Assembly: GCA_002269645.1 (NCBI GenBank)
Contig: NIVC01004560.1
Coordinates: 1 to 41,941, forward strand
Length of the DNA: 41,941 bases
DNA from: Macrostomum lignano
Taxonomy: Eukaryota
Direction of reading: 5' to 3'
Every line of letters starts with the position of its first letter. Position 1 is the stretch's first letter. The notes below the pieces were generated by a model, which worked only from the letters and a program-made list of their open reading frames with translations, was not told where the DNA came from and did not search any database. This document shows positions 139-37,963 of the stretch, in pieces. The position numbers were made by a program, and so were the translations under genes.

Positions 139-3100
139 ATTATTGCCTACAACCCGGCCTCAGGATCTCGGGTCACTCCTCAATGACACGGCGGAAATTC
201 AAATCAGCGTCACGGATGTCAATGACAATGCGCCAGTGTTCACGCAGAGTAAGGCCCGAATTCTTACGCTGTTATTAGCATTGGTTTTACATGCTAAATG
301 AGAATTTTTCCAGCACTTTTTAAGACTGAGATTGTTGTTTAATAAATCGACTTTAAACCTTTGAGAACGTCTTGCAAGCAGAGTGAGAATAGTAGCAGAC
401 AGAACTGCTACTTATAGCTGTTATAATACTATGCACATGCAACAGTTGCCCGTTGCCCCGCCATGAAAGCTTTTCGCAATCACAATCAATATTCTCTACT
501 AATAAGTAGACAAACCCAGACAGACAACTCGGCAGCATTAAACCTATATTTGAGTAATAGCTCGTACATTTAACTGCCGGCCGTAATCAACGTGCAAGCG
601 CGATTGCCGCTAAGTTGCTCTGCTGAGTTGGTCTCAGATTGCGGTGAAAATGTCTCACCTACAAAAACCATTATTACAGCATACTTTATTACTATTGTCC
701 AGTTAGTTTGGCTGGGTATAACTTTTCGTTGATGAAATCCTATTGCAGCTCAATACGATTTCTCAATAAATGAGACGCAATCGATCGGTTCCGTCATCAG
801 CACGGCGATACGCGCCACAGACAATGATTCAACGCCGGATACAACCGCGGCGGTTTTTTACGAGCTTCGTCCCTCTGGCGGGCCATTCGCCATCGACAAC
901 GCCACCGGCAGCTTCAGTTTGGCGTCGTCCGTCAGCAGAGACGACGGCGGTTCTGCCGTGCACACTTTGCAAGCGGTTGCCATCAATCTGGAGGCCACGC
1001 CGCAACTGTCAGCCGTAGTTACGGTCACTGTACGCGTCGCTAATGTCAATAACAATCCGCCCGTATTCTCCGCCAGTTTGTACAACTTTAGCGTGACTGA
1101 GAATGCGCCCTTGAGGACAAGTGTCGGCACTCTGGCCGTCACTGATCGCGACGGGGATGCCGTTACGATGACAGTCTTAAGTGGAGGTGCGCATTTTAGT
1201 CAATTGTTGAAACTGTCATAATGCTTTTCTTACGACACCAAGGAGTGAAGAATGACATTTAAATTTTTTTCAGACATGTTCCTTGTCGATTCGACTTCTC
1301 TGCTCACCAATGCTAGCATTGATCGAGAGAGTCTGATGGAGAATCCCATCGTACTCGTTGTGCAGGCCAGTGACGGCAGGTACCAGACGAACACTACAGT
1401 TCGAGTGACAGTCACAGATTTGAATGACAATGCGCCACAATTTTTACCGGCGGTTAGCGAGCTAACAGTTAGCGTTCAAGAAGCCGCGCCGAATGGGACT
1501 TCGGTTGTTAAGGTAAAAGCCATGTAGGGAGGCTTATTGGGACTCTGGAGCATATTTAACGTTGCGACTAAATCGATCCAGACGACCAAAATTCAAGCCC
1601 AGAATCTCTGGTACACAAAACAGAAAAATGTTCATTTTTCTTACTTTTTTCATTTCATTTTAGCTGAATTCAACAGACCCAGACGCTGGCCAGAATGGCA
1701 ATGTCACCTACAGCATCTTGACTGTCAACAGCCCGTTTAAAATCAACGCTTTGACAGGCGAGATCACCGTTGCCAATGGAAACCTGCTCGATTACCAGAA
1801 ACAGGCAGAGATTCCAATCTTAGTAGTGGCCAGTGACAGGGGTCAGCCGGTGCAATCTACAATGCTGACGTTGAAAGTTCAGCTAACCGATTCCAATGAC
1901 AAACCGGTAGTTTTCAATCCCAAAGTCTACACGGCAACTGTGCAGGAAAATCAGAGTCCCGGTCAGTTCGTCACCAGACTTTTTGCAAGTGATGCAGACA
2001 CAGTCCCGGCTGGCTTCAACTTTTCGTTGCCCGTAGCAGCAGATGCAAGCCTCTTTTATCTAGTCAATGCAACAATGACGAAAACAATCAGCTTACTGCT
2101 CAACGAATCTCTAGATAGAGAGCGGCAGAGCCTCTACTCAGTGACAGTCAGCGTCACTGACGGTCTGTTCAACGATTCGGCTATAGTTAATATAACTGTA
2201 GGAGATGAAAACGATAATCCGCCAACATTTCAAAAAACAGCCTATACGTTCTTTGCGGACGAGCAAGCTCCAAACGGTCAGGTTGTAGGCAGCGTAAAAG
2301 CCACCGATGCCGACATAGGATTCAATGCTCAGGTAAACTATTTCATTTCTGGCGGACAGGATAAGTTTGCTATCAACTACTCAACCGGAGAGATTTCTGT
2401 TCGAGCGTCAATAAATGGAACAGCTGGAACAAAATACGATATTATTGTGACGGCCCGCGATCAGGGAACGCCGTCTCTAAGTGGCACAACAACCGTGACG
2501 GTCTACGCCAATCAGACCAACTCGAATACTCCGATCTTCTCGCCATCAATCTACACCGTGTCCGTGAACGAGTCGGCTCCGAACAACACCTTACTCGTCA
2601 CTGTCAAGGCTACTGATGCCGACTTCCCGTCAGTCAATGGAATCATTTCCTACAGTCTGCTTGAATCGAACTCGACGTCCGGACTGTTCAGCGTCGACTC
2701 ATCGACCGGAGACGTCAGCTTAATCGGCGTGATCGACTTCGAGAAGGTCACGTCCTACACGGTGATCGTATTGGCCATCGACCACGCGGCTGCGCCTCGC
2801 ACGGCTACAGCTCAGATCTTCGTACAGGTCTTGAATGAGGACGACACACCGCCTGAGTTCGTTCCCAACTCCTACTTCTTCTATGCACCTCAAAATGCGA
2901 CAGTCGGATTCGCAGTCGGATCTGTGATTGCCGTTGATCCCGACTATCCTAGTGCGAATCCTCAACCAGTCAGCTACTCTGCATCGGCATCGGATTTTCA
3001 ACTCAACTCGACCACCGGAGCACTGACGGTTTCTTCGTCTTTGTCTGTCACAAACTACTCTTCGACGCCATCTGCACCGACGCGTCAGCAATGACGGGCA

Positions 3101-6100
3101 ATGCGACAGTCACTGTGTCAGTGATTCCATCGGATGTGTACTATGCGAAGGTACCTCAGTTCTTGTCTACACCTCTTGTAGCATCAGTGTTGGAGAATCA
3201 AACAGCCTACGTGTTTGTGATCGACGTGAATGCCACCATCAACGGCGGAGCAGAAGACGCCGGCGTCTTATACAGATTGGACAGTGGATCGACAATCTTT
3301 AATATCAGCAGTAGTTTGGTGAGTAGTTGAACAGTTTTTTTCCTGCTTGTTGACAGTTCAATAAAATGTCAATTCGTTCTTTATAGGGGATTGTGGAAGC
3401 GAGACCAGAGACGCTTGACAGAGAAGTGAACACCGAGGTAACATTGATCGTAATAGCCGTGAACACGGCCGAGCCGTCGTTCTCGTCGAGTCAGCCGATT
3501 CGAGTTCTGCTGCTCGACATCAACGACAATGCTCCTCGATTTGAGTTCAGTAGAGGCGAGGTACTTTTGTACGAGAATGCGACAGTTCGCCATGTTGTGA
3601 CAGACCTTCAGGCCACCGACCCAGACACTTCCTCAACAAATGTAAGTCACATTCTAGCTGACTATTGAACGAAGTTAAATCGTTTTCAATAACCAAATTT
3701 TAGCTATTATATGTTGTCTTACACTCATTTCAGCTCACATACTCGATTGTGGGCGATAACTCTGGCGGAAAGTTCCGACTTCAGTCGATTGAGCCCAATG
3801 CGTCTCAGCTGATCCTTGACGCTGTAGTTGACTACGAGGCCATGTCTGCTTTGGGATACGCCTACTCTCTCACCGTATGTTGTCTGAATTGCTTGGTGTT
3901 TTTTGTATGATTAGTTTAGTTTTGTACGCATTATACTCACTTTCAGATCGAAGTGAGTGACGGAAGTTTCAGCTCGAACTACTCGCTCATTGTTCGCATC
4001 GGAGACGTCAATGACAATCCGCCAGTGTTCAGTGCTCCGATGTACAACTTCTCTGTGGCGGAGCAGGCCGATGTGGGAACTCTGGTCGGTCGAGTCGTGG
4101 CCACAGACCCGGATACTGTGGATCTGAACAAGCTGGAGTACGCAGTAGTCGACACTGGTAACTTCTCAATGAATGCTTCAACCGGAGTGATTTCGACACT
4201 GACAATATTCGACAGACTCATCACGAGTCGCTTTTCGTTCAACGTTACCTGCACGGACACTGCTGGAAACATTGTATGTCATTGATTTTTTTACTGCTGC
4301 AGCTACTACGCATATTGTATGCTTTGAAAGTGAAACAATCAATTATACTATAAGTCCTGTTTCCACGAATGCAGGGTTGGACGTCTGTCAATGTCGACGT
4401 ACTCGACGTGAACAACTACAGTCCGAACATGACGAACCTACCCACATCATGGAACATCACCGAGAACGCGACCAGCTTGATGCAGAGCTTCGTCATCCAG
4501 GTGGTCGATAACGACTCCGGTCAGAATGCGAACGTATCGCTGAGCATCGTGTCCGGTGACTCGGTCGGCTCGTTCGCCATCAACGGAAGTCGGTCGAAGT
4601 GACAAAAGTTCTGGACAGAGAGACTCCGGGTCTCACTGTGGACTCGTCCGGAAACGGTGTCATCAAGCTTGTCATGAGAGCTGCGGACAATGGAGTTCCA
4701 CCTCGCAGCTCGACAGCCACTCTTACCGTGCTGTTGCAGGACATCAACGACTCGCCTCCGAGGTTCGCCATTCCTGCTGGTCGAGTACTGCAGCAGGCGG
4801 AGAGTCTGCCAGTGAGATCTACCATCGTCACGTTCGACATGCTCGATGCGGACTTGCCGTCATCGAATAACTTCACATTTAGCATCAGTTCGGCTTCTAA
4901 TCCCAACGGTGAGCTGAAATTAATTCTGTTGTTATGTCAAGCTTACTGAAGCGTTATGATTTTCCGCAACTAGTGTATGACTTAATGGTGAAACGTTTGT
5001 TCCGCAAACATTTCAGAGACTTTTGCAATTGATGGAAGCAACCTCGTTCTGAACAAAGCACTGAGCAGAGTCGCAATGCCCACTCACAACCTTACGATAG
5101 TTTGCTTTGATGGAGTTTTCAGTGTTTCTGTAAGTTAGCATATCCGCATAACTTTTGTATTTACTGCCTTTCGTGCATCTTTAATTTTTTTCATATATTT
5201 CAGACTTTTATCTTAGTAACGGTCGTTGACAGCAACAACTACGGTCCAGTATTTACCAGTGCAGTTTACGTGTTCAATGTGACTGAAAATGACCTGTCGA
5301 ATGCGACTGGACAGTTCATTGGAGTCGTGACGGCTGTGGACCGGGACACCGGAGTGAACGGCCAAGTGACATACTCTGTAGCTTCCCCCAGCAGCTTGAA
5401 GACTCTGCTTGCTATTAATGAGGTTAGTTTTTCGTATTTTCAGAGTTTTCAGTCCAAAGCACTTTTACAATTAACGGATCGGCTGGTGAAATATTTAGCA
5501 ACCCGCAAATATTTTAGACTGGAGCAGTTACCTTGAACGGGACAGTGGACAGGGAGACAAACGCAGAGTTGACGTTTTTCATCATGGCCACTGATATGGG
5601 TGCATCTCCAAGATTCGTAAGTTTGCGACAGAGATATGTTTTGTCTGCTGCTATATTAGTGTTAGATTATTCCACTATCGTTTCAATGGGCAGTGATTTT
5701 TCTGTATTTTTTGAGACAAATGATCTACTTCGAGAGATACGCTAATTCAGACAGCGAAGGTTCTAAGTGGACGTTTTTTAAGTATATTTGATTATTTTAA
5801 CGTAATTGTGGTATCCACCGGCTTCAAAATTCAACTCACATTGGTTTATCTTTATTTGTTATATTTAACTGATCTCCATGCACTGTCGAGTAGTCTCGTG
5901 AAAGAAATTTTAACGGCATGGTTCAGTATTCGAAATCTTGCAATGATAGTTCACCAAGCATTTACAGCTAAAGTTAATTCCTCACTTAAAATTACTATCA
6001 GAAACTATTGAGTTCAAAATCGATGTATGGATAGTGACTTTCTTAATACTAGCTCGTATTGGTATCAGCGTACAAAGCCATAAATACGTCAAATACAATT

Positions 6101-9100
6101 ATGTTATCTATAGTACATCATGTGCTGTAAAAATCCCAGCTGCGAAGGAGCAGATTGACTTGCAAGAAAGGATACTGTTAATACGCTCGTACACGGCGGC
6201 AACAAAAACTACGCTATATCATCCTTTTTACGCTCGTAACTATGTCTGCTGCTATAAATATAATCATTTCACTAAAAATGAAAAGAAATTTGAAGTCTAT
6301 GAATCCCAAGTACACATGCAATATTTAGCATTAAATTTTCGGAAAGCATGGTATTCCTAGCATCTCCTAATCGACCTCAATTCCCATTATCACTTGATTT
6401 ATTTATTATAGTTACCTACACTCAAAATGTGAGTGTCAAAATATTTACCTACACTCACGATTCACTAACTACAATCACATCAACTTGTAAATTCACAAAC
6501 TCGTGACGTAAAATATTAATCAGGGAACAGCAGAGCTACACCTGAAAATACTCGACGTAAATGACAACAAGCCGGAATTCACAATGGTCGCATACACTGG
6601 AACCGTTGCGGAGGGGTCATCTGCTGGAGCAGCAGTGAGCTTTGTAAGCCAAACTTCATATAATTTCTTCATATAAAGATATGAAAATAAATACAAAGGT
6701 AAATCAACTATATATTCTACTCGTGTTAGGTAACGGCAATTATAGCAACCGACAAAGACATCGAAAATAACAGCTATGTTGAGTTCTCGCTCTCCGGCCC
6801 TCACTCAAACTGGTTCAGCATTAGCCAGTCCGGTCAGATACAAGTAGCCAGCGGCGCCCTACTCGACCGAGAGAATCAGTCGAGCTTCTCCTTGAATGTG
6901 ACTGCCAACAACACTAGAGGAGAGCCCACCTGGCTTGCAAACTCGGTTCCTGTGACAATCCAGCTGTCTGATATCAATGACAATGCTCCCGTGTTTACCA
7001 AAGCGTCGTTCGACTTCTTCATCGACTTCTTTTCACCTGTAAGCCAAACTTTAGGAGACGTAACCGCCACAGATGCGGATGCTGGATTCAACGCTCAGAT
7101 TACTTACTTCCTCAGAGGAGGGGAGGACCGGTTCGCCATTGACTTCAGAACAGGAGTCCTGACAGTGAGCAAAGCGCTCAACGGGTCTTCGAGCAACGTT
7201 TTTAGTCTTGTTGTTACGGCACGCGATCAGGGAACGCCGTCTCTAAGTGGCACAACAACCGTGACGGTCTACGCCAATCAGACCAACTCGAATACTCCGA
7301 TCTTCTCGCCATCAATCTACACCGTGTCCGTGAACGAGTCGGCTCCGAACAACACCTTACTCGTCACTGTCAAGGCTACTGATGCCGACTTCCCGTCAGT
7401 CAATGGAATCATTTCCTACAGTCTGCTTGAATCGAACTCGACGTCCGGACTGTTCAGCGTCGACTCATCGACCGGAGACGTCAGCTTAATCGGCGTGATC
7501 GACTTCGAGAAGGTCACGTCCTACACGGTGATCGTATTGGCCATCGACCACGCGGCTGCGCCTCGCACGGCTACAGCTCAGATCTTCGTACAGGTCTTGA
7601 ATGAGGACGACACACCGCCTGAGTTCGTTCCCAACTCCTACTTCTTCTATGCACCTCAAAATGCGACAGTCGGATTCGCAGTCGGATCTGTGCTTGCCGT
7701 TGATCCCGACTATCCTAGTGCGAATCCTCAACCAGTCAGCTACTCTGCATCGGCATCGGATTTTCAACTCAACTCGACCACCGGAGCACTGACGGTTTCT
7801 TCGTCTTTGTCTGTCACAAACTACTCCTTCGACGCCATCTGCACCGACGCGTCAGCAATGACGGGCAATGCGACAGTCACTGTGTCAGTGATTCCATCGG
7901 ATGTGTACTATGCGAAGGTACCTCAGTTCTTGTCTACACCTCTTGTAGCATCGGTGTTGGAGAATCAAACGGCCTACGTGTTTGTGATCGACGTGAATGC
8001 CACCATCAACGGCGGAGCAGAAGACGCCGGCGTCTTATACAGATTGGACAGTGGATCGACAATCTTTAATATCAGCAGTAGTTTGGTGAGTAGTTGAACA
8101 GTTTTTTTCCTGCTTGTTGGACAGTTCAATAAAATGTCAATTCGTTCTTTATAGGGGATTGTGGAAGCGAGACCAGAGACGCTTGACAGAGAAGTGAACA
8201 CCGAGGTAACATTGATCGTAATAGCCGTGAACACGGCCGAGCCGTCGTTCTCGTCGAGTCAGCCGATTCGAGTTCTGCTGCTCGACATCAACGACAATGC
8301 TCCTCGATTTGAGTTCAGTAGAGGCGAGGTACTTTTGTACGAGAATGCGACAGTTCGCCATGTTGTGACAGACCTTCAGGCCACCGACCCAGACACTTCC
8401 TCAACAAATGTAAGTCACATTCTAGCTGACTATTGAACGAAGTTAAATCGTTTTCTATAACCAAATTTTAGCTATTATATGTTGTCTTACACTCATTTCA
8501 GCTGACATATACAATTGTGGGCGATAACTCTGGCGGAAAGTTCAGACTTCAGTCGATTGAGCCCAATGCGTCTCAGCTGATCCTTGACGCTGTAGTTGAC
8601 TACGAGGCCATGTCTGCTTTGGGATACGCCTACTCTCTCACCGTATGTTGTCTGAATTGCTTTGTGTTTTTTGTATGATTAGTTTAGTTTTGTACGCATT
8701 ATACTCACTTTCAGATCGAAGTGAGTGACGGAAGTTTCAGCTCGAACTACTCGCTCATTGTTCGCATCGGAGACGTCAATGACAATCCGCCAGTGTTCAG
8801 TGCTCCGATGTACAACTTCTCTGTGGCGGAGCAGGCCGATGTGGGAACTCTGGTCGGTCGAGTCGTGGCCACAGACCTGGATACTGTGGATCTGAACAAG
8901 CTGGAGTACGCAGTAGTCGACACTGGTAACTTCTCAATGAATGCTTCAACCGGAGTGATTTCGACACTGACAATATTCGACAGACTCATCACGAGTCGCT
9001 TTTCGTTCAACGTTACCTGCACGGACACTGCTGGAAACATTGTATGTCATTGATTTTTTTACTGCTGCAGCTACTACGCATATTGTATGCTTGGAAAGCG

Positions 9101-12100
9101 AATCAATCAATTATACTATAAGTCTTGTTCCCACGAATGCAGGGTTGGACGTCTGTCAATGTCGACGTACTCGACGTGAACAACTACAGTCCGAACATGA
9201 CGAACCTACCCACATCATGGAACATCACCGAGAACGCGACCAGCTTGATGCAGAGCTTCCTCATCCAGGTGGTCGATAACGACTCCGGTCAGAATGCGAA
9301 CGTATCGCTGAGCATCGTGTCCGGTGACTCGGTCGGCTCGTTCGCCATCAACGGAAGTCGGGTCGAAGTGACAAAAGTTCTGGACAGAGAGACTCCGGGT
9401 CTCACTGTGGACTCGTCCGGAAACGGTGTCATCAAGCTTGTCATGAGAGCTGCGGACAATGGAGTTCCACCTCGCAGCTCGACAGCCACTCTTACCGTGC
9501 TTTTGCAGGACATCAACGACTCGCCTCCGAGGTTCGCCATTCCTGCTGGTCGAGTACTGCAGCAGGCGGAGAGTCTGCCAGTGAGATCTACCATCGTCAC
9601 GTTCGACATGCTCGATGCGGACTTGCCGTCATCGAATAACCTCACATTTAGCATCAGTTCGGCTTCAAATCTGAACGGTATTTTTAGGCCTAAATCTCAT
9701 GTTTACAAAAATGAAAGTAATGGTATATGCTTGTGTTTTATAGTACATTTTAATTACCTGTCATTTTGCAGATACATTCGCTATCCAAGGCAGTGCATTG
9801 GTTCTTAACAAAGCGCTGAATGTCAGAGTTCAGTCGAGTTACAATCTGACCATTATTTGTTTCGATGGAGTGTTCAGCGTTTCGGTAAGCTGATCGATGC
9901 AGGAGGTCTAAACACGAAAATGTGTAATGTTTGGTGAAACATTTTATTTCTTGCCCACGTCTTTATTTTAGACATACATTAATATTTCAATAGCTACTGG
10001 AGGAGGCAACAACTACAGTCCGAAATTCAGCAGCTCTCTCTACGCTTTCTATGTCACTGAGAACGACCTTTCAAGTGCACTGAACCAATCTATTGGCGTC
10101 GTGAGCGCTGAGGATAGAGATACGGGACTCAACGGGCAGGTTGTGTATTCGATTGCGTCTCCGAGTTCGTTAAAACATCTTTTAGCCATCAATGAGGTAA
10201 TGGGATGAAAGTATTTCAATATTTTTGACAATAAACTTTTGGGAATTCTTGGTCTAAAATGCAGCGCTCGTATAGGATGTATGTCATATCGTTTTAGAAT
10301 GAAATGCTGTATTCGCAGTCTTTTGTTTCAAGTAACGATTTTTATCTGCTTCAGCATTTATTCACAACTAGACGCTTTTATGCGTTGATTACCATCAAGA
10401 TAAAATCCGGTATCCCTATGAGCTTGTTCCTAAAAAACCAGAAGCAAGCAGGACGAACCAGTAAAACTGATACCGCTGCTTACACCCGAATGGGGGGCTG
10501 ATGAATGGTAACCGAGTCCAGAGAAATACCTAGTTGTGTTTTTTATACACAATGTCTGAATAGAGCAGATTCTCACTTCTAATCACGACGCCAACTGTTG
10601 AATATGATTTCTAACCGGTAATGTATTTCCTTGAATCTTTGAAATTGCTGCCTTTCCATGCAAATTGTGCTTTCGGATGGTACGTAGCACTCACTCTACT
10701 TCTTTGCAATTGAATTCGTCAAAACATCAAAACCTTTCATCCACAAATGTTTTCTTTATAGAAGCTAAATTTAGATCATTCCATAGACAGCTGCGTTCAC
10801 GCAGAACGCTTTATCCGGTCCGCAAACGTTTCGTCTCAGCCTAATTGATTTAAGAACGGAGCGACTACGTTTGATGGAATACAACGCGAAACAGTTTCTG
10901 TGCTAGAATGTTAAATACGAGCCTTTGATACACTGGCTAGTCTAGGGGCGAAATGTTTAGCGAACTGAATTAAACATTTTGCGAGAACGCAGCTGTCTAT
11001 GGCTTGATCTAAATTTAGCTCCTACTTTGAAAACATCCGTGATTTTGCAGTCTGGACGAATTCAATTGCAAAAAAAATATTTAAGGAGATGAAGTCGAGA
11101 ATTCCTATTTGCTGCAGCAGCTAAAGAAAAAAACTGCACTCGAATATAGACAATAAAGTCAATCCGGCTAATAAAGAGCCAATCAATCAGACAGCTCGCA
11201 ATTCAAAGCTGCACTCTCCCAGCCACAGATTTTATAATACAAGCCTAGATGGGCCAGCTGTCTGATGGCAGTGCGAAAACCCCGGGGTTAAGACCATAGA
11301 CTGTAGCTTCTGCTGTTCTCAAGACTCGAATGCTTGAGTACCACGTCTAGGTAATATAGAATCAGTGCTCCCAACAGACTGCAAGCTAAATCAGCCATTT
11401 ATAGCACTTCTCTCTGGTTTAAAGACAATTAAGTAGAAAATTTCAAACCGAATACTGAAGTATTCTTGCTCCAGAACTTGATTTCTACATTTGGTGCTGA
11501 CTTTTATTGAAATTATCCACTTGACTGACTTTTGTCAATATGATTGGCTTCATTGTATACTCGTATAATCTATGGAAGTGGCTGCTGCTTCTGCAGCAAA
11601 AGAGAACTATCGACTTAGATGGCTTGCTTATCTACTTGACTGACAAAGTAACATTACTGCATGATGCTACACCCTTGAGGGCCTTTCGTAATCAAAAGTA
11701 TAAAATTAAAAAATTCAGGTTATTAATTACGGCGTCCCGATTACATCTTTATTAAAAATCTGTCCTTCGCATTTACCAGAACGGAACGGTCACCCTAAAC
11801 GGTACAGTGGATCGAGAAGCGACTCCGAAGCTCACATTGTTTCTTCTAGCTTCGGACTTGGGCACACCGCCTAGAATGGTGAGAACGGGAATTCAGGAAA
11901 TCTTATTCAATATTAAATGAACGAGGCATTAATTACTACTGACAAGCCTTTGTTTAAATGCAGGATACAGCCGAGCTGCAACTTACAGTACTCGATGTCA
12001 ACGATAACAGGCCCGAATTTACCGCTGCTGCATACACCGGATCTGTTCCGGAGGGATCAACTGCTGGTGTGACAGTTAGCTTTGTAAGTTTAATAGAAAA

Positions 12101-15100
12101 GTATCGGCATTCAACTTGAACTCCCAGTGCGAATCACAAAAAAATATTGGAAAATTTCACTTAAAAATTACCTGTGTTGCAATTAAATATGCAAAAGTTT
12201 CTATCCAATTTTTGCATTTTTATTATCAATTTTGTAGATTACATTCAGAAACATCAATATTCAAATTGAAGCATAATCACAATAAATGCTGTTACGTTAA
12301 ATAGATTTTTCCAGCGTCATATAAATGTATTTGAAATTAATCCTGAACTTGCAGTCAACTGGAATTGATGCACGAGACAAAGACATCGAAAATAACAGCT
12401 ATGTTGAGTTCTCGCTCTCCGGCCCTCACTCAAACTGGTTCAGCATTAGCCAGTCCGGTCAGATACAAGTAGCCAGCGGCGCCCTACTCGACCGAGAGAA
12501 TCAGTCGAGCTTCTCCTTGAATGTGACTGCCAACAACACTAGAGGAGAGCCCACCTGGCTTGCAAACTCGGTTCCTGTGACAATCCAGCTGTCTGATATC
12601 AATGACAATGCTCCCGTGTTTACCAAAGCGTCGTTCGACTTCTTCATCGACTTCTTTTCACCTGTAAGCCAAACTTTAGGAGACGTAACCGCCACAGATG
12701 CGGATGCTGGATTCAACGCCCAGATTACTTACTTCCTCAGAGGAGGGGAGGACCGGTTCGCCATTGACTTCAGAACAGGAGTCCTGACAGTGAGCAAAGC
12801 GCTCAACGGGTCTTCGAGCAACGTTTTTAGTCTTGTTGTTACGGCACGCGATCAGGGAACGCCGTCTCTAAGTGGCACAACAACCGTGACGGTCTACGCC
12901 AATCAGACCAACTCGAATACTCCGATCTTCTCGCCATCAATCTACACCGTGTCCGTGAACGAGTCGGCTCCGAACAACACCTTACTCGTCACTGTCAAGG
13001 CTACTGATGCCGACTTCCCGTCAGTCAATGGAATCATTTCCTACAGTCTGCTTGAATCGAACTCGACGTCCGGACTGTTCAGCGTCGACTCATCGACCGG
13101 AGACGTCAGCTTAATCGGCGTGATCGACTTCGAGAAGGTCACGTCCTACACGGTGATCGTATTGGCCATCGACCACGCGGCTGCGCCTCGCACGGCTACA
13201 GCTCAGATCTTCGTACAGGTCTTGAATGAGGACGACACACCGCCTGAGTTCGTTCCCAACTCCTACTTCTTCTATGCACCTCAAAATGCGACAGTCGGAT
13301 TCGCAGTCGGATCTGTGATTGCCGTTGATCCCGACTATCCTAGTGCGAATCCTCAACCAGTCAGCTACTCTGCATCGGCATCGGATTTTCAACTCAACTC
13401 GACCACCGGAGCACTGACGGTTTCTTCGTCTTTGTCTGTCACAAACTACTCTTCGACGCCATCTGCACCGACGCGTCAGCAATGACGGGCAATGCGACAG
13501 TCACTGTGTCAGTGATTCCATCGGATGTGTACTATGCGAAGGTACCTCAGTTCTTGTCTACACCTCTTGTAGCATCAGTGTTGGAGAATCAAACGGCCTA
13601 CGTGTTTGTGATCGACGTGAATGCCACCATCAACGGCGGAGCAGAAGACGCCGGCGTCTTATACAGATTGGACAGTGGATCGACAATCTTTAATATCAGC
13701 AGTAGTTTGGTGAGTAGTTGAACAGTTTTTTTTTCGGCTTGTTCGACAGTTCAAAAAAATGTCAATTCGTTCTTTATAGGGGATTGTGGAAGCGAGACCA
13801 GAGACGCTCGACAGAGAAGTGAACACCGAGGTAACATTGATCGTAATAGCCGTGAACACGGCCGAGCCGTCGTTCTCGTCGAGTCAGCCGATTCGAGTTC
13901 TGCTGCTCGACATCAACGACAATGCTCCTCGATTTGAGTTCAGTAGAGGCGAGGTACTTTTGTACGAGAATGCGACAGTTCGCCATGTTGTGACAGACCT
14001 TCAGGCCACCGACCCAGACACTTTCTCAACGAATGTAAGTCACATACTTACTGACTATTGAACGAAGTTAAATCGTTTTCTATGTTTTAGCTATTATATG
14101 TTGTCTTACACTCATTTCAGCTCACATACTCGATTGTGGGCGATAACTCTGGCGGAAAGTTCAGACTTCAGTCGATTGAGCCCAATGCGTCTCAGCTGAT
14201 CCTTGACGCTGTAGTTGACTACGAGGCCATGTCTGCTTTGGGATACGCCTACTCTCTCACCGTATGTTGTCTGAATTGCTTTGTGTTTTTTGTATGATTA
14301 GTTTAGTTTTGTACGCATTTACTCACTTTCAGATCGAAGTGAGTGACGGAAGTTTCAGCTCGAACTACTCGCTCATTGTTCGCATCGGAGACGTCAATGA
14401 CAATCCGCCAGTGTTCAGTGCTCCGATGTACAACTTCTCTGTGGCGGAGCAGGCCGATGTGGGAACTCTGGTCGGTCGAGTCGTGGCCACAGACCCGGAT
14501 ACTGTGGATCTGAAAAAGCTGGAGTACGCAGTAGTCGACACTGGTAACTTCTCAATGAATGCTTCAACCGGAGTGATTTCGACACTGACAATATTCGACA
14601 GACTCATCACGAGTCGCTTTTCGTTCAACGTTACCTGCACGGACACTGCTGGAAACATTGTATGTCATTGATTTTTTTACTGCTGCAGCTACTACGCATA
14701 CATGTATTGTATGCTTGCAAAGCGAATCAATCAATTATACTATAAGTCTTGTTCCCACGAATGCAGGGTTGGACGTCTGTCAATGTCGACGTACTCGACG
14801 TGAACAACTACAGTCCGAACATGACGAACCTACCCACATCATGGAACATCACCGAGAACGCGACCAGCTTGATGCAGAGCTTCGTCATCCAGGTGGTCGA
14901 TAACGACTCCGGTCAGAATGCGAACGTATCGCTGAGCATCGTGTCCGGTGACTCGGTCGGCTCGTTCGCCATCAACGGAAGTCAGGTCGAAGTGACAAAA
15001 GTTCTGGACAGAGAGACTCCGGGTCTCACTGTGGACTCGTCCGGAAACGGTGTCATCAAGCTTGTCATGAGAGCTGCGGACAATGGAGTTCCACCTCGCA

Positions 15101-18100
15101 GCTCGACAGCCACTCTTACCGTGCTTTGCAGGACATCAACGACTCGCCTCCGAGGTTCGCCATTCCTGCTGGTCGAGTACTGCAGCAGGCGGAGAGTCTG
15201 CCAGTGAGATCTACCATCGTCACGTTCGACATGCTCGATGCGGACTTGCCGTCATCGAATAACTTCACATTTAGCATCAGTTCGGCTTCTAATCCCAACG
15301 GTGAGCTGAAATTAATTCTCTGTTATTATGGCAAGCTTACTGAAGCGTTATGATTTTCCGCAACTAGTGTATGACTTAATGGTGAAACGTTTGTGCCCCA
15401 AACATTTCAGAGACTTTTGCAATTGATGGAAGCAACCTCGTTCTGAACAAAGCACTGAGCAGAGTCGCAATGCCGACTCACAACCTTACGATAGTTTGCT
15501 TTGATGGAGTTTTCAGTGTTTCTGTAAGTTATCATATCCGCAGAACTTTTGTTTTGACTTTCTTTCGTGCATCTTTAATTTTTTTCATATATTTCAGACT
15601 TTTATCTTAGTAACGGTCGTTGACAGCAACAACTACGGTCCAGTATTTACCAGTGCAGTTTACGTGTTCAATGTGACTGAAAATGACCTGTCGAATGCGA
15701 CTGGACAGTTCATTGGAGTCGTGACGGCTGTGGACCGGGACACCGGACTGAACGGCCAAGTGACATACTCTGTAGCGTCGCCCAGCAACTTGAAGACTTT
15801 GTTGGCTATTGAGAAGGTGCTTTTTGGACTAAAGGGCATGTCAACTTAAGCTCATAAAATGGAGCCCGAGTAACATATGTACACAAATGATACGTCATTC
15901 TGCTCACACCAGAAAGCGGGGTTTGGCAAAAAATGAAAAATATTAGAGTTGGGAGAACAAGCAAGGGGATAATTAGGTACTCTTATGTTAACTTGAGCTC
16001 ATAGAGTAGAGTCTCTATAACTATCCCCTTGTTGTTTCTTATCTATCCAAAGTCCAATTTTTGGCAACTTTTTGCCAAACCCAGCCAGAATGACGTATCA
16101 TTTGTGTACGTAGGTTACTCTGACTCTACTTTATGAGTCTAAGTTAACAGGCCCATTTCCTTTTTCTATTCGTTTTACTGCCATATTCTACAAAGTATCA
16201 TATTTTGGTGGTTTCAGAACGGTACTGTGACCTTGGATGGAACAGTGGATCGAGAGACAAACGCCCAGCTTACTTTCTTTATCATGGCTGCAGACATGGG
16301 CGTTTCTCCGCGATATGTACGAGCTATGTTTGATGTTGAATATGATGTACTTTAATATAAAATACGTGATACTAGAAGTGATTTATTGATACTTTTTATA
16401 TTTTTAGGTGGCAATGAAGATAAAAGAAAAAATATACAATTGGTTTAGTTTTAAAAATGAACGTAAATCACGTTCACTACTGATTAATATCTATAATATA
16501 CCTTAAAATCACTATTTACATTTCACTGAAACGAAACGTCGTCTCACGAAACATCATAGCATTTGTTGCTTACGTGTAGGAAAATATTCATTGGCTTACA
16601 CATCCCCTAAGTCATTCTATTTTAAGGGACATATGCAGCCATAGGTTATAACTTTTAAATGGCCTCGTTGGATTACGATAATAAAAATATGCATCTTCAA
16701 ACTCAATCTTTTTGCTTGTTTATCCAGGGTTCAGCTGAGCTGCAACTAAACATCCTTGATGTGAACGATAATGCTCCGGAATTTACTGCAGCACAGTACA
16801 CTGGTTACGTTGCGGAGGGCTCGCCAAATGGCACGATAGTCAGTTTCGTAAGTGCTCAATATACGCTCGTATGCTGATTTTCCGAATCGTTTTCTAATAA
16901 AATCATGCTCTCAGTTTATCGAGAATGTTTTTACTAATTTCAACAGTCGCCGCCTGTGCAAATATCCGATCGCGACATTGGCAACAATGCCTACGTCGAA
17001 TTTTACCTGACCGGTCTGTCAGCGAGCCAATTCCGAATCAACCCCACCTCCGGCCAGATTGAGGTGGCGTCTGGTGCTGTGCTCGACAGAGAGACTCAGC
17101 CCGTTCTGAGCTTTGCTGTGGTTTCCAACAACACTAAAGGACAGCCAGGTTGGCTCAGCCAGACAGTTAACATAACTATCCAGCTCAACGACATCAACGA
17201 CAATGCTCCGGTGTTTTCTACATCGTATGCTTTCTCGATTCTTGAAAATGCTACCGTTATGTCAACCGTTGGCCGGGTTGAGGCCACCGACGCGGATCTG
17301 GGCGACAATGCAACAGTCATGTACGGCATCGCTGGAGGTGCCGATGGCCGATTTGAAATCCAAGTCAGCAGCGGCGAGATCCGACTGTCCGGCAGCCTGG
17401 ATCGGGAGACTAAAGATTTTTATCAACTGAACGTAACCGCAACTGATAGAGGCTCTCCGTCGAAGCAGAACTCATTGATAGTCAATATCACCGTACTAGA
17501 CGTAAACGACGTCGTCCCAAGCTTTGGCATTCCTTCGACAGACGCTGTTACCTTTACAGTGCCCGAGGAACAGTCAGTGCCGCAGACAATCGGCCGAGTC
17601 AATGCAAGCGACGCTGACCTGGGTGAAAATAGCCGATTAACCTACCTGATTGCGAATGCGTCCGTGCCATTCAACATCACGTCCGATGGAGTTGTCCAGT
17701 CAAGCGGTCTTCTTGATCGGGAGTCCATATCCCGCTACAGATTCGTGTGTACGCTAGCGACGCTGGATTCCCATCACTGACAGGCTCAACAGTTGTAGCC
17801 GTTCAACTGACGGACATCAATGACTGGAGTCCAGAGTTTTCGCAGCCAATCTACCAGACATTTACGTTGGAGAAGGCACCTATTGGCACTGTACTTGCAA
17901 TCGTGGCTGCTACTGACAAGGACATAGGCGCCAATGCAAATCTTACTTATTACCTGCAAGGGAACGGGTCCGAATACTTATCAGTTGATCCATTGACTGG
18001 ATTTGTAAGCATTAAACGTACAATAACCATAAACGAACTGCTTAGCAAGGGTTTGATATCACGGAATTCCTCATCTGGAAATGAAACGGTATACAGTCCT

Positions 18101-21100
18101 CTGGTACTACAGGTAAGTACGTTGTGAATATTTTATATGATACAAGTGGTCGGAAGTATAAATATTTAATTCAATACTGAATCCTATTTTTAGCTATTGG
18201 CATTCGACAATCCAGTTGATACAAGCAAAAAACTGAACGGCACAGCTCAACTATGGATCACTTTGACGCAGGTTTCAGACAGTTTGCCGACTTTCACTGC
18301 GGCCAGTTATTCTTTCAGCGTAAACGAAAACTCGCCAGCGGGCACCCCCGTTGGCTCTGTGTCCGCGTCGGTTGTTGGAACGTCAATAGTTGTTAAGTAC
18401 AAACTGGACACGACTAATTCGCTGTTCCAGATCGACGAATTAACTGTAAGTTTTGAACTCATTGTATCAGTATACCAATTTTCGGTTCTGAAATTCTACC
18501 ACGAACATACCTTCCTTCCAGGGCAACATCACCGTTCAAATGGGGGCTGCACTAGACAAAGAGAACACAAGTTTATCAAGTCAACTTTCTCTGACGGTAT
18601 TAGCGTTCACCGATACCGTGCCGTCAAGGCAGAGCTATGGAGCGGTAAGTAGCTTAAGACATTAATTAAAATATACCGGATTTAGGATTTTTTAAAGTAC
18701 ATGTAACTCAGTTCATTTCATCGCTCGTAATTTAATACATCTATTAAACCAAATTTTGAATATTTTCAGTGCACGGTAAGTACTCACTGTAGCAGTTCTG
18801 GAAAGGTGTCTGCTGCTATTGTATGTGCAAAACCATGCGTCCTTGAAACGTGAAAAAACTTTCCAAAACCTACACATGCTATCCTCTTATAATTGTCAGT
18901 GACTTTCTTGCAAAAAAATTTCTGTTATTGACACTCTACCAGTAGATAGGCTTAAGTACTCCACGAACTGCTTTGAAGTGGTATCTGGTCTTTCATTTAT
19001 TATACCCATTTATTTTGTCAAGTCCAAAACTTTGTCCTCGATACTTTATTAGTAACAATCAAAATATAATAAATGCTCGTATCTGCATTTAAAAATACTC
19101 AAAGCTGCATCAACTAATGAAGCAAAAAGTGAAGAGATCGAGTATATTACCAGTAGATGCCTGTATTAAAGAAAACGTCTTGTTACACGGACTTTAAGCT
19201 GTACAAAAACTAAGCCAACTACCGACTTCAATTCAAACATTTAAAGGTGCGCATCACTCTGACTGACGTCAACGACAATCAGCCGGTGTTTTCTCAGGCC
19301 AGTGGTTACTCTTTCGTTGTCGCGGAAGAGCTCACGGAGCCTGTGAGGATCGGCGCGGTCTCTGCCACCGATGCAGACTCTGGAAACAACGCGTTAATTA
19401 GCTACAGCATCGTTGGTGGCAATACAGCCGGCGTCTTTGCTCTCAACAGCACTACTGGCGAACTGACAGCCGTGTCTAGAATCGACAGAGAAGCCGTCGC
19501 CGTCTACTTGCTTCAGATTGCCGCAATCGACAATGGGAGCCCGACAAGACTCAGCTCAACAGTCTCGGCCACAGTATCCTTGACTGATGTGAACGACAAC
19601 GCGCCGGTGCTGTCTATCGGCAGTGCACTAGACTTGAACGTGACCGAGGGCTACGGTCCTGGCTACTTAGCTGCAGTTGTGACCGCCACCGATGCGGACC
19701 TCGGACTGAATGGCAGCGTCAACTTTGACCTCATTCAAACTGACGTGCCACCAATGTTTTACATCACGTCAAATGGTGAGGCTAAAATTGTTGTTTTAAA
19801 ATTTATTAGAACAAATGGATTTGCCATTTACAAAGCTTTTATGAAACGTATGGCGTTTTTCAGGAACCGGCTCTGTGCTGTTAAAAACACTGGGTACCCT
19901 GAACTATGCCTTGAGGACATCCTACCAGCTGACTATCATAGCTTACGACCTCGGCAATCCAGTTCAGTCCTCCAATGCTACAATCGAAGTTTCAGTCATC
20001 AAGTTCGACACTAACCGGCCCCGATTTACCAGCGAATTTTTCAACACAAGCATCGCGGACAATCTGCTCCGAATACGCCAATCTTCGATTTGCCAGCCGG
20101 CCCTCGGCCGTTCAACTACACAATTATAGATGGAGACTCAAACGGCGCATTTTCCATCACGAATCAAGGGAGAATATCAATCACAAAAGTGTTAGCTCCG
20201 CCGTTGCCTCGGGTCTACACGCTCAAAATTTCGGCCACGGACGAGCTGAACAACACAGCCAGTACCATCCTACAGGTGTGGCTAACGTCACCAACCACGG
20301 CGGTGTTCAATACGACTGACGTCACTTTGTCCTGGAACGAGGATCACGGCTCTGGACGCGAGCTGGTGTACGACTTCGCCACAGTGGACGAACTGCTTGG
20401 CAGAACGGTTCAATACGTTATTCAAACGTGCTCACCTATCGGCTGCGAATCCTTGTTTTCCATTGACCCAGCAACTGGTCAGTTCTACGTGATGAGCAGC
20501 CTCGACCGGGAGACCGTGAGCAAATATTCCTTTGTGATACGCGCCAATCTGCCAGGAAGTAGCGGAGGTTCATCAGGCAGGCGCCGAAGGCAGGCCATCG
20601 CTCCACCAACGACCGACACGTCATCAGTGACGTTGACAGTAACGGATGTAAACGACAATCCTCCAGTTTTTAACGTTCCTAGCCCTTTCAGAGTTGGAAT
20701 TCTCATCAACTCACCTGTAGATACGCTGGTTTACACACCAAGTGTAAGTGAATAACCAAGAAGTTGTCATTTTTACGTACGAGATCCAAGATCCCAGATC
20801 CTAGATCCCAGATCCTAGATCCCAGATCCTAGATCCCAGATCCTAGATCCCAGATCCTAGATCCCAGATCCTAGATCCCAGATCCTAGATCCCAGATCCT
20901 AGATCCCAGATCCTAGATCCCAGATCCTAGATCCCAGATCCTAGATCCCAGATCCTAGATCCCAGATCCTAGATCCCAGATCCTAGATCCCAGATCCTAG
21001 ATCCCAGATCCTAGATCCCAGATCCTAGATCCCAGATCCTAGATCCCAGATCCTAGATCCCAGATCCTAGATCCCAGATCCTAGATCCCAGATCCTAGAT

Positions 21101-24100
21101 CCCAGATCCTAGATCCCAGATCCTAGATCCCAGATCCTAGATCCCAGATCCTAGATCCCAGATCCTAGATCCCAGATCCTAGATCCCAGATCCTAGATCC
21201 CAGATCCTAGATCCCAGATCCTAGATCCCAGATCCTAGATCCCAGATCCTAGATCCCAGATCCTAGATCCCAGATCCTAGATCCCAGATCCTAGATCCCA
21301 GATCCTAGATCCCAGATCCTAGATCCCAGATCCTAGATCCCAGATCCTAGATCCCAGATCCTAGATCCCAGATCCTAGATCCCAGATCCTAGATCCCAGA
21401 TCCTAGATCCCAGATCCTAGATCCCAGATCCTAGATCCCAGATCCTAGATCCCAGATCCTAGATCCCAGATCCTAGATCCCAGATCCTAGATCCCAGATC
21501 CTAGATCCCAGATCCTAGATCCCAGATCCTAGATCCCAGATCCTAGATCCCAGATCCTAGATCCCAGATCCTAGATCCCAGATCCTAGATCCCAGATCCT
21601 AGATCCCAGATCCTAGATCCCAGATCCTAGATCCCAGATCCTAGATCCCAGATCCTAGATCCCAGATCCTAGATCCCAGATCCTAGATCCCAGATCCTAG
21701 ATCCCAGATATAACAGAAGCATACAATTATTTCATCCGTCTGCCTACAGGCAACCGACAGAGACTCGACTTCGGTGCTGACCTACTCACTGTCAAATTTG
21801 ACTGACCAGTTCTACATCAATCTGAACAGCGCAGAGCTTCGCACCCGAGCCACATTCTCGTCCTCGGCCAGCACCCCAATTGTGGGCGTCGAGGTGACGG
21901 ACGGAAAGTTCAACGCGTCGATGGTGATTGTTGTGACCTTGCTGACTAGTACTAACAGCCTGGTTTTGACTGCCGGCATAACGCCGGAGGTTTTCAACCG
22001 GTACGAATCACTGATCAAGACCAATTTGTCGGCACTGTTGGGTGTCGATTTTCGCGTTGCCAAGGTAACATCAGCCGTGTCGGGCAGCGGCGACTCGGCC
22101 AAAGTTGATCCGACAAAAACTGACGCCTACATTTACGCCTACAACCCGACAACTGGCACCCTGATCGAGCAGGCCGAACTTCGACGAATTATCGAAGCGA
22201 AACGCGCAGAAATCGCCGCATTTTTTGCACTGTTTGGCGCCAAAAGCTACGACGGAGTGCGCACTCCCGTACTGACCAGCGGTGGCGGCGTCACCAGCAC
22301 TTCGACGGGACTGACGGCGGCGGAGATTGCGCTGATTGTGCTGGCCTGTCTGATCGTCGTCGCTGCCATCATTGCCATCATTGTGCTGCTGTGCTGGCTG
22401 TCTAAAAGGATCAAGCGTCGCTGGCGTCAACTGGAAGCGGACGAAGCTGCGTCGGCAGCGGCAGCTGGCGGTGGCAGTCGGCTGTACGGCTCGCTGGCTC
22501 CGGAAGTGCTGCAGCTGCAGCGGAAAAAGCAGACGGCTACGGACGGCGGCCGAGTCAACGGCGGAGCAACCACGGGCGAGTTGGAGATCGCAGCGGAGGC
22601 GGCTCCGGCGCCATTGGCGGCGATGGAACTGGTGTCCAATCCGACCTACCAGAGGAATCCGAGCAGGCGGTACCCGCCCAGCCAGTTCGGCTCAGCCTCG
22701 GCTGTAGCAGCCGCTGCCGCCGCGGCCAATGGTGCCGAAAATTTCAACGACGATTCGCCGAGGCGTAGTACAGCGTAAGTGTTTGGGAGTGCTTTGTTGT
22801 TGTTTTTTTGGCTTGGGAAAATTTAAAAAGTACTGTACGAACTTGTACCTATCACATGTTTATCTACAAAATTCTCATGATTTATCTTTGCATCTTCAGT
22901 CGCCAATTATAAACTTTGCACTGTTTAGCCACGGGCTTTTCGAAAGTACCCTCTGGGGTTCCGAGAGTTTACATTAATTTAATGGCCTTTCAACCGTTTT
23001 TTGGTTCAACTCCTTTAAAAAGAGACGAGTATAAATTATAAACGAATTGAAAATCGATGAATTTCAATTTTTCAGGACTCACTTTCACTTCACGGAATTC
23101 TACTTCGATGATAAGTAAATACAATTCATTTGCGTTCTTTAGTGTCTTCTTTTCTGTGTTGATATGTAAGCTATATCTTTGATATTGAGTTATGCAAACC
23201 TATAAACGTTTTATTAGACGTTGACTATATACATTTTGTAGAATGCTTGCCTACTGCTTTTGCTTTCTACTGTTACATAAAAGTTAAGTAGTATGCCATA
23301 GCACATTACGACTTGATAAACTTGAAGTCCAGTTTGTCAGGTTCTGGATTGAAGTACGCAGTTCTTGTGATAATTAGTTTTTAAACCTGCACCACTAAGC
23401 CTATATTTACTGCATATAATAGTTTAGTTGTCGATGTGTTTTATCGATACCAAAGCACTCCCTGAACTCGTACCAACGCGTCTTATTACTCGTAGTAGTC
23501 AATACAAATCAGTAGCTATTAGCGCAAATTAAGCTACACTGAAATAACGCACGAAAAAAAATCCAAAAAGGTTTTCGGACAACGTGTCGGGCACTAGCCT
23601 GTCCAGGATTATGTTTGTACCTGCGGCGTACAACTCGCTCAGCGTTAGCATTGGCCTAAATGCTGAAGAGGCCACAACGTAAGGCGCTGGTCAATAGCTA
23701 GTTTTAACAAATCCTAACAATTTTTTATGCAACTGTCCTAACACTACAGGTAACAAATATCTGTATTTGCAAGCTAAAGATTTTATATCTAAAAATTGAG
23801 GCTAAATAATCTAGTAGCAGCGCACGTTTTCAAATTATCATATTCGACACTCAAGAAGCGACGAGGCTACAAACGAGTTGTTTTTGATCGACCCGTCCGA
23901 AGGAATCGATATTGGATTCACGTAAACTTTTTTTCACAGATAACTTCAGTCAGGTTTCTCTATTGGAATTTTGGGTGTAGAAAATCACTCATTGTTTAGG
24001 GTCATCAAATACCAAGATTTTAACCATTGCATGCTTTCTTAATCATCATTTTTAACGTTGAAAGTAATGTTTCTTCAGTTGGCCTCAAATGAACCTTCTA

Positions 24101-26592: not shown

Positions 26593-26625
<33 letters not shown>

Positions 26626-37106: not shown

Positions 37107-37534
37107 ACAGCTTGGCAAACCTGATTGATTTTCCGGGATTTCCCCTGTCCTAGTTGTATTTCTCTAAAATTCTGGAAGATAAATCGAGATTCTAGATAAT
37201 AGCTGCATCTAAGATTAGTTTGTTTTGCTATCGCATTGTACCGTACAATTAATTATTGAAAATTTTAAACCTTTGCTGGCATACGCATATGTTATCTTTG
37301 ACCTTACCTGTTGTTTAATAGGTAAATTATTACTGTATGGAGGTACATGTAGATATAGGCATTTTGACTGTCAACTGTCCACCCCATACAAGCATACGGC
37401 TTTCAAATAATTATGCAACCTTGTGCAAGGGTATGCCGCCTACTTACATGTAAAACTTTGAAATGAGTATTTATTTACGCCACTATCCAAGGGGGGGGGG
37501 CGCGGCCGCGGGAGACCGACAGCGGAGACCGCCA

Positions 37535-37963
37535 CAATTTGCCCGCCAGACAATTTGCCCGCCAGACAATTTGCCCGCCAGACAATTTGCCCGCCAGACA
37601 ATTTGCCCGCCAGACAATTTGCCCGCCAGACAATTTGCCCGCCAGACAATTTGCCCGCCAGACAATTTGCCCGCCAGACAATTTGCCCGCCAGACAATTT
37701 GCCCGCCAGACAATTTGCCCGCCAGACAATTTGCCCGCCAGACAATTTGCCCGCCAGACAATTTGCCCGCCAGACAATTTGCCCGCCAGACAATTTGCCC
37801 GCCAGACAATTTGCCCGCCAGACAATTTGCCCGCCAGACAATTTGCCCGCCAGACAATTTGCCCGCCAGACAATTTGCCCGCCAGACAATTTGCCCGCCA
37901 GACAATTTGCCCGCCAGACAATTTGCCCGCCAGACAATTTGCCCGCCAGACAATTTGCCCGCC
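37535..37963. repeat. 16-bp tandem array (CAATTTGCCCGCCAGA)n, about 27 copies, bracketed by a 15-bp inverted repeat
   Basis: Perfect array. GACCGCCACAATTTG (37527-37541) and CAAATTGTGGCGGTC (37994-38008) are exact reverse complements. Confidence 0.95.

Follow-up and report, generated by a model that had tools for sequence, protein, structure and literature searches.

We analysed a 41,941-nucleotide (nt) stretch of the flatworm Macrostomum lignano genome (assembly GCA_002269645.1, contig NIVC01004560.1, positions 1 to 41,941; hereafter the window), whose plus strand encodes, between 139 and 22774, a long array of extracellular cadherin repeats (ECs) followed by a membrane-adjacent domain (MAD) and a single transmembrane (TM) helix. 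The explanation that best accounts for the data as a whole, and which we hold to be very probably correct, is that a single gene, encoding a type I membrane cadherin of a giant, MAD-bearing family, contributes its 3' 22-27 kb to the window. Its predicted product would comprise at least 43 complete ECs plus one that is cut, the MAD, one TM helix and a tail continuing into at least one downstream exon (24579-24710), and would fall in a clade with the giant EC-only MAD cadherins of scallops, abalone, Lingula, a nemertean and flatworm. Judged from the predicted protein, the gene adds a long member to a family of giant invertebrate MAD cadherins that is on record but uncharacterised, and it does not represent a new kind of cadherin; its most unusual feature is a set of three ten-repeat blocks homogenised to 98-99% identity.

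All cadherin-like reading-frame segments within 1-23,000 lie on the plus strand, and the minus strand yielded no EC match. Introns were located by searching for GT..AG pairs that preserve both the frame and the repeat register. The resulting spliced model, 139-22774, consists of 36 exons with AG..GT borders throughout and 35 introns, all GT..AG, and after six 1-nt insertions its translation runs for 4,872 amino acids (aa) with no in-frame stop. ECs were counted with a custom cadherin hidden Markov model (HMM) built from 120 cadherins, which had been retrieved by a homology search with an EC exon, all of whose matches were generic cadherins with at most 40% identity. Scanning the corrected translation in this way, a check proposed in the first-pass annotation of this DNA, gave 44 ECs, 43 complete and one partial (146-241) cut at the 5' window edge. 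Pfam PF00028 agrees with the HMM on the parts scanned, marking 13 stretches over the opening 1,413 aa and 9 over the closing 1,347 aa with E-values reaching 1e-155; tandem ECs of ~110 aa joined by Ca2+-linker motifs are the hallmarks of the cadherin superfamily. The first-pass annotation had placed a cadherin at 139-22774 with at least 43 ECs, counted as 43 linkers and one final EC; the count held, as did its two coordinates: position 139 is a true acceptor (CCACAG/A, the slash marking the exon border here and below), and 22774 is the final base before a GTAAGT donor. It had also noted correctly that the window contains no signal peptide, the N-terminus lying upstream of it. Its description of the linkers as DxND-type was only partly borne out, as all 43 linkers are present and just 24 of them match the canonical DxNDx; the remaining 19 are degenerate (NQTNSNTP, LNEDDTPP, VIPSDVYYAKVPQF, KFDTNRPRF and LTSPTTAVF are examples). 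With linkers of this kind the filament should be able to bend in many places. The ectodomain also carries 158 N-glycosylation sequons. The parts of the model outside the three repeated blocks are as follows.

139-248, plus strand: first in-window exon, holding the end of an EC and the linker DVNDNAPVF; donor AGA/GTAAGG after 248; HMM match at 83-107
749-1186 and 1274-1512, plus strand: two exons with unique ECs 5' of the repeated blocks, placed by splice sites and EC matches 2-4
16947-20743, plus strand: unique membrane-proximal block (U4) of five exons, holding ECs 35-43 and the start of EC44
20744-21749, plus strand: phase-0 intron, nearly all of it a 14-bp tandem array
21750-22774, plus strand: exon that completes EC44 and continues through the MAD and the TM helix into the cytoplasmic tail, of which it holds the first ~125 aa

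In the Pfam scan neither an EGF nor a LamG domain turned up from the EC array to the membrane; every match was to PCDH15_12th or to a Cadherin-type domain. The array in the last intron (AGATCCTAGATCCC x 66, 20782-21709, 99% matches) takes up almost all of the sequence that separates the donor at 20743 from the acceptor at 21750, so that no EGF or LamG exon is possible in 20744-21749. What lies before the membrane instead is a compact domain and the helix, both of which the earlier reading had recognised as a ~100-aa juxtamembrane domain followed by a TM segment.

21957-22271, plus strand: MAD (~100 aa), following the last EC and preceding the TM helix
22317-22400, plus strand: single TM helix, AAEIALIVLACLIVVAAIIAIIVLLCWL; hydrophobic, a helix in the AlphaFold2 model, and aligned with the PCDH15 TM helix in 6c14

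On a single-sequence basis the MAD is matched by Pfam PF23206 (PCDH15_12th) at 23.2 bits, under the 27-bit cut-off, and a search of the PDB sequences matched only PCDH15 (6c14, E 1.6e-5), with the alignment continuing through the TM helix. A profile of the MAD from 19 relatives reached PCDH15 at 3e-29 and MAD28 of CDH23 at 2e-18. The AlphaFold2 model, computed from the same 19-relative alignment, has a predicted local distance difference test score of 88.5 overall and of 95-98 within the domain. Its best Foldseek match is mouse CDH23 EC25-MAD28 (8tri; root-mean-square deviation (rmsd) 2.3 Å, E about 1e-7), together with PCDH15 EC9/10-MAD12 (6eet and 6bxz; rmsd 2.0-2.9 Å, E about 1e-7) and then Nup54, with CELSR1 far down the list (E 0.03). 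A ferredoxin-like fold with a likeness to Nup54 has been described for MAD12 and is predicted also in CDH23, PCDH24, FAT and CELSR (bioRxiv 10.1101/460097). The predicted structure thus confirms 21957-22271 as a ferredoxin-like MAD of the PCDH15/CDH23 type, and with it the earlier proposal of a SEA- or ferredoxin-like membrane-adjacent domain, the modelled translation matching CDH23 MAD28 and PCDH15 MAD12.

Relatives were sought by an exhaustive HMMER search of the last exon against 1.84 billion representative proteins, with their ECs counted by the custom HMM. The search recovered 21 proteins, led by cadherins of 3,300-6,148 aa; in all the full-length relatives a gap of some 100 aa separates the EC array from the TM helix, which is followed by a tail. 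The principal relatives, all of them predicted and uncharacterised, are listed below with their automatic names.

P0126 (XP_033754776.1), Pecten maximus: protocadherin Fat 4-like, 6,148 aa, 54 ECs
P0123 (XP_074649083.1), Tubulanus polymorphus: cadherin-23-like, 3,989 aa, 31 ECs
P0124 (XP_069125193.1), Argopecten: protocadherin Fat 4-like, 3,606 aa, 31 ECs
P0129 (XP_067672062.1), Haliotis: protocadherin Fat 4-like, 3,554 aa, 28 ECs
P0121 (XP_021355742.1), Mizuhopecten: cadherin-related tumor suppressor-like, 3,545 aa, 29 ECs
P0130 (XP_013401573.1), Lingula: protocadherin Fat 4, 3,345 aa, 25 ECs
P0128 (XP_078576868.1), amphioxus: protocadherin Fat 4-like, 3,277 aa, 26 ECs
P0125 (A0A1I8FLM7), Macrostomum lignano: Cadherin domain-containing protein, 624 aa (fragment), 1 EC

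Weaker matches comprise PCDH15-like proteins with 11 ECs (amphioxus, starfish and acorn worm), insect Cad99C, arthropod Cad89D and sea-urchin fragments named cadherin-23/protocadherin-15. The last 1,341 aa of the window's protein can be aligned over their whole length with the C-terminal ~1,300 aa of the Tubulanus protein, at 746 bits and 38% identity across 1,330 aa, and with the same region of the scallop proteins at 33-34% identity (about 540-553 bits). Over all collinear relatives the C-terminal ~1,300 aa are 31-38% identical, and out-of-register alignments score about 200-300 bits; the collinear C-terminal block of ~12 ECs, MAD and TM helix therefore stands above repeat-level similarity and ties the gene to the giant MAD cadherins of spiralians. 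Within this block the MAD is 50% identical to that of the Macrostomum relative, which gives the highest local identities of any relative. The Tubulanus protein itself contains 31 Cadherin stretches and a PCDH15_12th match of 36.4 bits, above threshold, and Pfam finds neither EGF nor LamG domains in it. The window's gene resembles these spiralian proteins in its EC array, ~100-aa MAD, TM helix, tail and internal tandem EC blocks, and differs from them in that its three 10-EC blocks are far more alike (98-99%). Its in-window count of 43 complete ECs and one partial exceeds that of every relative except the Pecten protein.

The relatives have internal EC-block identities, as detected by sliding-window self-BLAST, of 60-89% in Pecten, 54-76% in Mizuhopecten and 83-96% in Lingula. 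Amplification of EC blocks seems to be recurrent in the giant MAD-cadherin family (P0126, P0121 and P0155; 54-96% identity). As a separate observation, the automatic name 'protocadherin Fat 4-like' is misleading, these proteins being EC-only and MAD-bearing.

The earlier reading ended the protein at …RRSTA as a PDZ-type C-terminus, which we now regard as an artefact. The apparent stop lies inside a splice donor, the phase of that donor matches an exon further downstream, and this next exon is conserved; the gene consequently continues beyond 22774.

22775-22780, plus strand: splice donor GTAAGT, containing the apparent stop TAA at 22776-22778 (AGC/GTAAGT)
24579-24710, plus strand: downstream cytoplasmic exon (…A/DEDGNPIIVVNNADSTDHEDAWLAAATNRPGSGPASDDPPADE…), with acceptor CTCTCCAG/A and donor AGT/GTAAGT; its phase matches the donor at 22774
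26356-26812, plus strand: candidate terminal exon with a frame-compatible acceptor, its open reading frame (ORF) ending …DLYAADAFNTAL*, a class I PDZ-ligand-like end

Spliced from 22774 (phase 2) to 24579, the tail reads …SPRRSTA-DEDGNPIIVVNNADSTDHEDAWLAAATNRPG…. Across 41 aa the exon entered at 24579 shares 61% identity with the tail of the Macrostomum lignano cadherin P0125 (E 1.4e-7), and its identity to the Tubulanus tail is 43% (pairwise E 2e-6). The tail carries an NPTY motif at 22638-22649, NP.Y after the TM helix being common to several relatives, and a conserved motif, DEDGNPIIVVN…EDAWLAAATNR. A class I PDZ-binding end has the form S/T-x-hydrophobic and binds harmonin in the tip-link pair. 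The C-termini of the relatives are TSF, TSL, THL or TVL, and the end …DAFNTAL* of the candidate ORF (stop at 26810-26812) resembles these T-x-L/F endings, making it a candidate for membership of the gene; a Nematostella CDH23-like cadherin similarly ends …DETTL (PMC3899209). Homology gave the candidate exon at 26356-26812 no support, either by tblastn with the relatives' tails or by Pfam. The tblastn search found only 24579-24710, leaving further 3' exons unsupported, and Pfam matched nothing in the downstream ORFs at 26345-26809, 32550-34573, 38918-39649 and 30797-31531.

Thirty of the repeats are carried by three tandem blocks, which we term macro-units U1 to U3.

1664-6643, plus strand: U1, 10 exons, about 11 ECs, 1,155 codons; 1-nt corrections near 3059 and 4591
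6730-12083, plus strand: U2, 9 exons, 10 ECs, 1,057 codons; the sole unit free of frameshifts
12355-16847, plus strand: U3, 9 exons, 10 ECs, 1,055 codons; 1-nt corrections near 13450 and 15125
3734-3874, plus strand: small exon, with copies, uncovered through seemingly truncated ECs
5017-5129, plus strand: small exon, with copies, uncovered in the same way

The cores of the units (2442-4910, 7208-9679 and 12833-15302) are 98-99% identical, introns included; U1 and U3 remain about 98% identical onward to 5416 and 15810, and U2 and U3 are 98.5% identical back to 6751 and 12376. Outside these homogenised tracts, 220-aa windows are 69-90% identical between blocks. The 5' part of U1 is unlike that of U2 and U3, and the distal part of U2 (9680-12083) has diverged from both U1 and U3. 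Over the last three exons of each block, the proportion of nonsynonymous differences (pN) is 0.10-0.22 against a proportion of synonymous differences (pS) of 0.48-0.82, the distal exons of U2 standing at 0.21-0.22 against 0.82, and the distal introns measure 907, 1,583 and 401 nt. From the diverged flanks, the low pN relative to pS and the unequal intron lengths, we read the blocks as old duplicates under purifying selection whose cores were recently homogenised, and not as a simple assembly duplication. Gene conversion or unequal crossing-over is the most likely agent of that homogenisation.

Each block is bounded by phase-0 introns placed identically within the EC (…VSF/…D.D), which means that the reading frame would be kept in transcripts with one, two or three blocks alike. 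Combined with the 19 non-canonical linkers, such frame-neutral, unit-skipping isoforms make 4.5 nm per EC an upper limit for the span, and the 190-200 nm calculated earlier for the in-window ectodomain survives as an upper bound only. The macro-units could conceivably act as length-tuning cassettes, with one, two or three of them used through alternative splicing or with copy number varying between individuals, an idea that we rate as unlikely. If it were true, one gene would yield MAD-anchored filaments of ~110, 150 or 195 nm, fitting different spacings of apical protrusions.

Several points weigh against the account of a single, intact giant MAD cadherin. The best relative is only 47-61% identical, and in short stretches; function is read solely from architecture and distant relatives; that all three units enter one mRNA is an assumption, skipping one or two of them being frame-neutral; the 98-99% identity of the cores may be inflated by assembly polishing across repeats; the N-termini of the mollusc relatives gave no specific match to EC1-2 of CDH23 or PCDH15 in the PDB sequence search; and the six frameshifts could mean a decaying gene. 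The open frame requires 1-nt insertions near 3059, 4591, 13450, 15125, 17748 and 20062, all six being single-base deficits and three of them changes of homopolymer length (CC>C, GGG>GG, TTTT>TTT). On the strength of this pattern, of their occurrence in the unique block as well and of the lack of any nonsense codon, they are most likely indel errors of the assembly.

The alternative is a pseudogene, or a gene with pseudo-exon blocks in which U1 and U3 are dead copies and a shorter protein is made with U2 alone. The distribution of the lesions lends this some support, with two frameshifts in U1 (3059, 4591), two in U3 (13450, 15125) and none in U2, and with the one at 3059/13450 common to U1 and U3. 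However, the unique block U4, which is obligatory for reaching the TM helix, also has two (17748, 20062), so that the indels are not limited to spare copies; nonsense codons are absent across all 4,872 codons; GT..AG is kept at all 35 introns; half of the indels are homopolymer-length changes; and the shared indel may have spread through the same conversion that homogenised the cores. We consider decay unlikely.

The multiplicity of the macro-units might likewise be an artefact, through haplotype or repeat expansion in the assembly of a true gene with one unit and about 24 ECs here. Cores that are 98-99% identical with their introns would fit such an origin, as would an assembly that clearly has indel errors or lesions, and a divergence of 1-2% falls within the heterozygosity range of invertebrates. 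Yet every unit has its own diverged flanks, with 69-90% protein identity, saturated synonymous sites and low pN; the intron lengths in these flanks differ; a diploid has two haplotypes, whereas three units are present; and the relatives carry internal block repeats too, at lower identity. Taken together, this makes an artefact distinctly unlikely, and we retain the three units as genuine parts of one giant MAD cadherin.

The gene was also compared with the known MAD cadherins. With PCDH15/Cad99C it shares a MAD directly before the TM helix, the best PDB sequence match and the MAD12 fold (rmsd 2.0-2.2 Å), and it differs in having at least 43 ECs where PCDH15 has 11. Its membrane-proximal ECs are not collinear with PCDH15 EC8-11 (the best stretches of 6c13 are out of register), and its tail shows no similarity to that of PCDH15. 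CDH23 is alike in its long EC-only array followed by MAD and TM helix, and supplies the top Foldseek match and a profile match of 2e-18 on MAD28; on the other hand, vertebrate CDH23 has 27 ECs, the single-sequence search gave no match to its MAD28, and no collinearity with EC25-27 was found, 8tri lying outside the top PDB matches for the last 1,237 aa. Neither the 27 or 11 ECs of the tip-link pair nor a collinear, orthologous membrane-proximal region is thus present. CDHR2 (PCDH24) likewise has a predicted MAD and forms long intermicrovillar links, but it has only 9 ECs, and no direct sequence or structure match to it was seen. PDB searches with the EC arrays matched CELSR1, clustered protocadherins, CDH23, PCDH15, FAT4 and DCHS1 alike; the ECs alone do not classify the protein, because the scores tracked the length of the solved fragments. 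The N-terminal 'handshake' of EC1-2 is the defining feature of the tip-link pair, and these diagnostic repeats lie upstream of the window.

The earlier assignment to the tip-link/inter-microvillar-link group is accordingly upheld in that the MAD is of the PCDH15/CDH23 type and EGF and LamG are lacking, while the attribute 'unusually long' was overstated. The Pecten protein has 54 ECs in 6,148 aa, and the Nematostella CDH23-like cadherin, found in the mechanosensory hair bundles of the anemone, has at least 6,074 residues and shows that members of the MAD/CDH23-like kind with more than 50 ECs exist (PMC3899209). A further source, PMC10089651, contains nothing on the evolution of invertebrate CDH23/PCDH15.

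Among the relatives, the amphioxus protein P0128 (26 ECs) matches PCDH15 collinearly at both ends, EC1-7 at the N-terminus and EC9-MAD12-TM at the C-terminus, and looks like a long PCDH15-like cadherin alongside the 11-EC PCDH15-like gene of the same animal. It aligns with the window's gene only out of register.

Fat resembles the gene in its comparable number of ECs (34) and in a MAD-like domain predicted after the EC array, and differs from it in placing EGF and laminin-G domains between MAD and membrane, whereas here the MAD abuts the TM helix. A planar-polarity cadherin of the Fat/Dachsous type, suggested by the very many ECs, the Fat 4-like names of the relatives, matches of Pfam Cadherin_FAT4_N to some repeats and the MADs predicted in FAT and CELSR too, is nevertheless highly improbable: from the last EC to the TM helix there is only the MAD, without EGF or laminin-G here and in the Tubulanus relative; the MAD fits PCDH15/CDH23 far better than CELSR1 (Foldseek E about 1e-7 against 0.03) and by sequence PCDH15 only; and Cadherin_FAT4_N also matches many unrelated cadherins. 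Pfam found none of the EGF and LamG modules or cytoplasmic motifs of Fat/Dachsous, and the tail is unlike any match.

As a giant MAD cadherin, the gene would carry a MAD-TM module homologous to that of PCDH15/Cad99C, Cad89D and CDH23, and would have grown by tandem duplication of a block of ~10 ECs (5-5.6 kb, 9-10 exons), the blocks being old and their cores, introns included, recently homogenised via gene conversion or unequal crossing-over. The ectodomain would be a long filament with heavy N-glycosylation; its 24 canonical Ca2+ linkers would be stiff, and it could bend at the 19 degenerate ones. We infer that the MAD packs on the last EC and favours parallel cis-dimerisation near the membrane, as in PCDH15, and that the tail, with its NPTY and DEDGNPIIVVN…EDAWLAAATNR motifs and probably a T-x-L end, couples the filament to cytoplasmic scaffolds. 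A likely role would be to bridge the extracellular space as a long link, either from one apical protrusion (microvillus, stereovillus or cilium) to another or from cell to cell. If expressed at full length, the protein would be among the longest cadherin filaments known and a candidate link protein for ciliary or microvillar structures of sensory or epithelial kind.

The locus adds a well-resolved gene structure to the poorly described clade of spiralian giant MAD cadherins, which links PCDH15/Cad99C, Cad89D and CDH23 by a common MAD-TM module. It also illustrates a route to longer cadherins, in which multi-exon blocks of ten repeats duplicate in tandem and are then homogenised, and it serves as a warning to annotators through a stop inside a splice donor, six frame-breaking indels and misleading 'Fat 4-like' names.

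Further features were observed within and beyond the gene. EC43 contains an insert, …PGSSGGSSGRRRRQAIAPP…, whose GRRRRQ at 20576-20593 is a furin-like (RRRR) site; the ectodomain might be cleaved at this predicted furin-type site, two repeats above the membrane. Downstream, 29633-30211 holds 10.7 copies of a 54-bp minisatellite unit (95% matches), with several frames open on both strands, and 31196-31422 is a 12-bp array of GAG/GCT type within a Glu-Ala-rich ORF on the minus strand (30797-31531). A perfect 16-bp tandem array at 37534-37963 (ACAATTTGCCCGCCAG, 27 copies, 100% matches) generates spurious ORFs in all frames on both strands. At 32550-34576 two adjacent plus-strand ORFs (351 and 322 aa) split by one stop have the appearance of a single interrupted gene, perhaps of mobile-element origin; they gave no Pfam match and no exact match in the protein collection searched. 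Finally, a plus-strand ORF at the 3' edge (41542-41901) resembles the Major Facilitator Superfamily weakly, below the threshold (PF07690, 18 bits), and may belong to a neighbouring transporter gene as its first exon.

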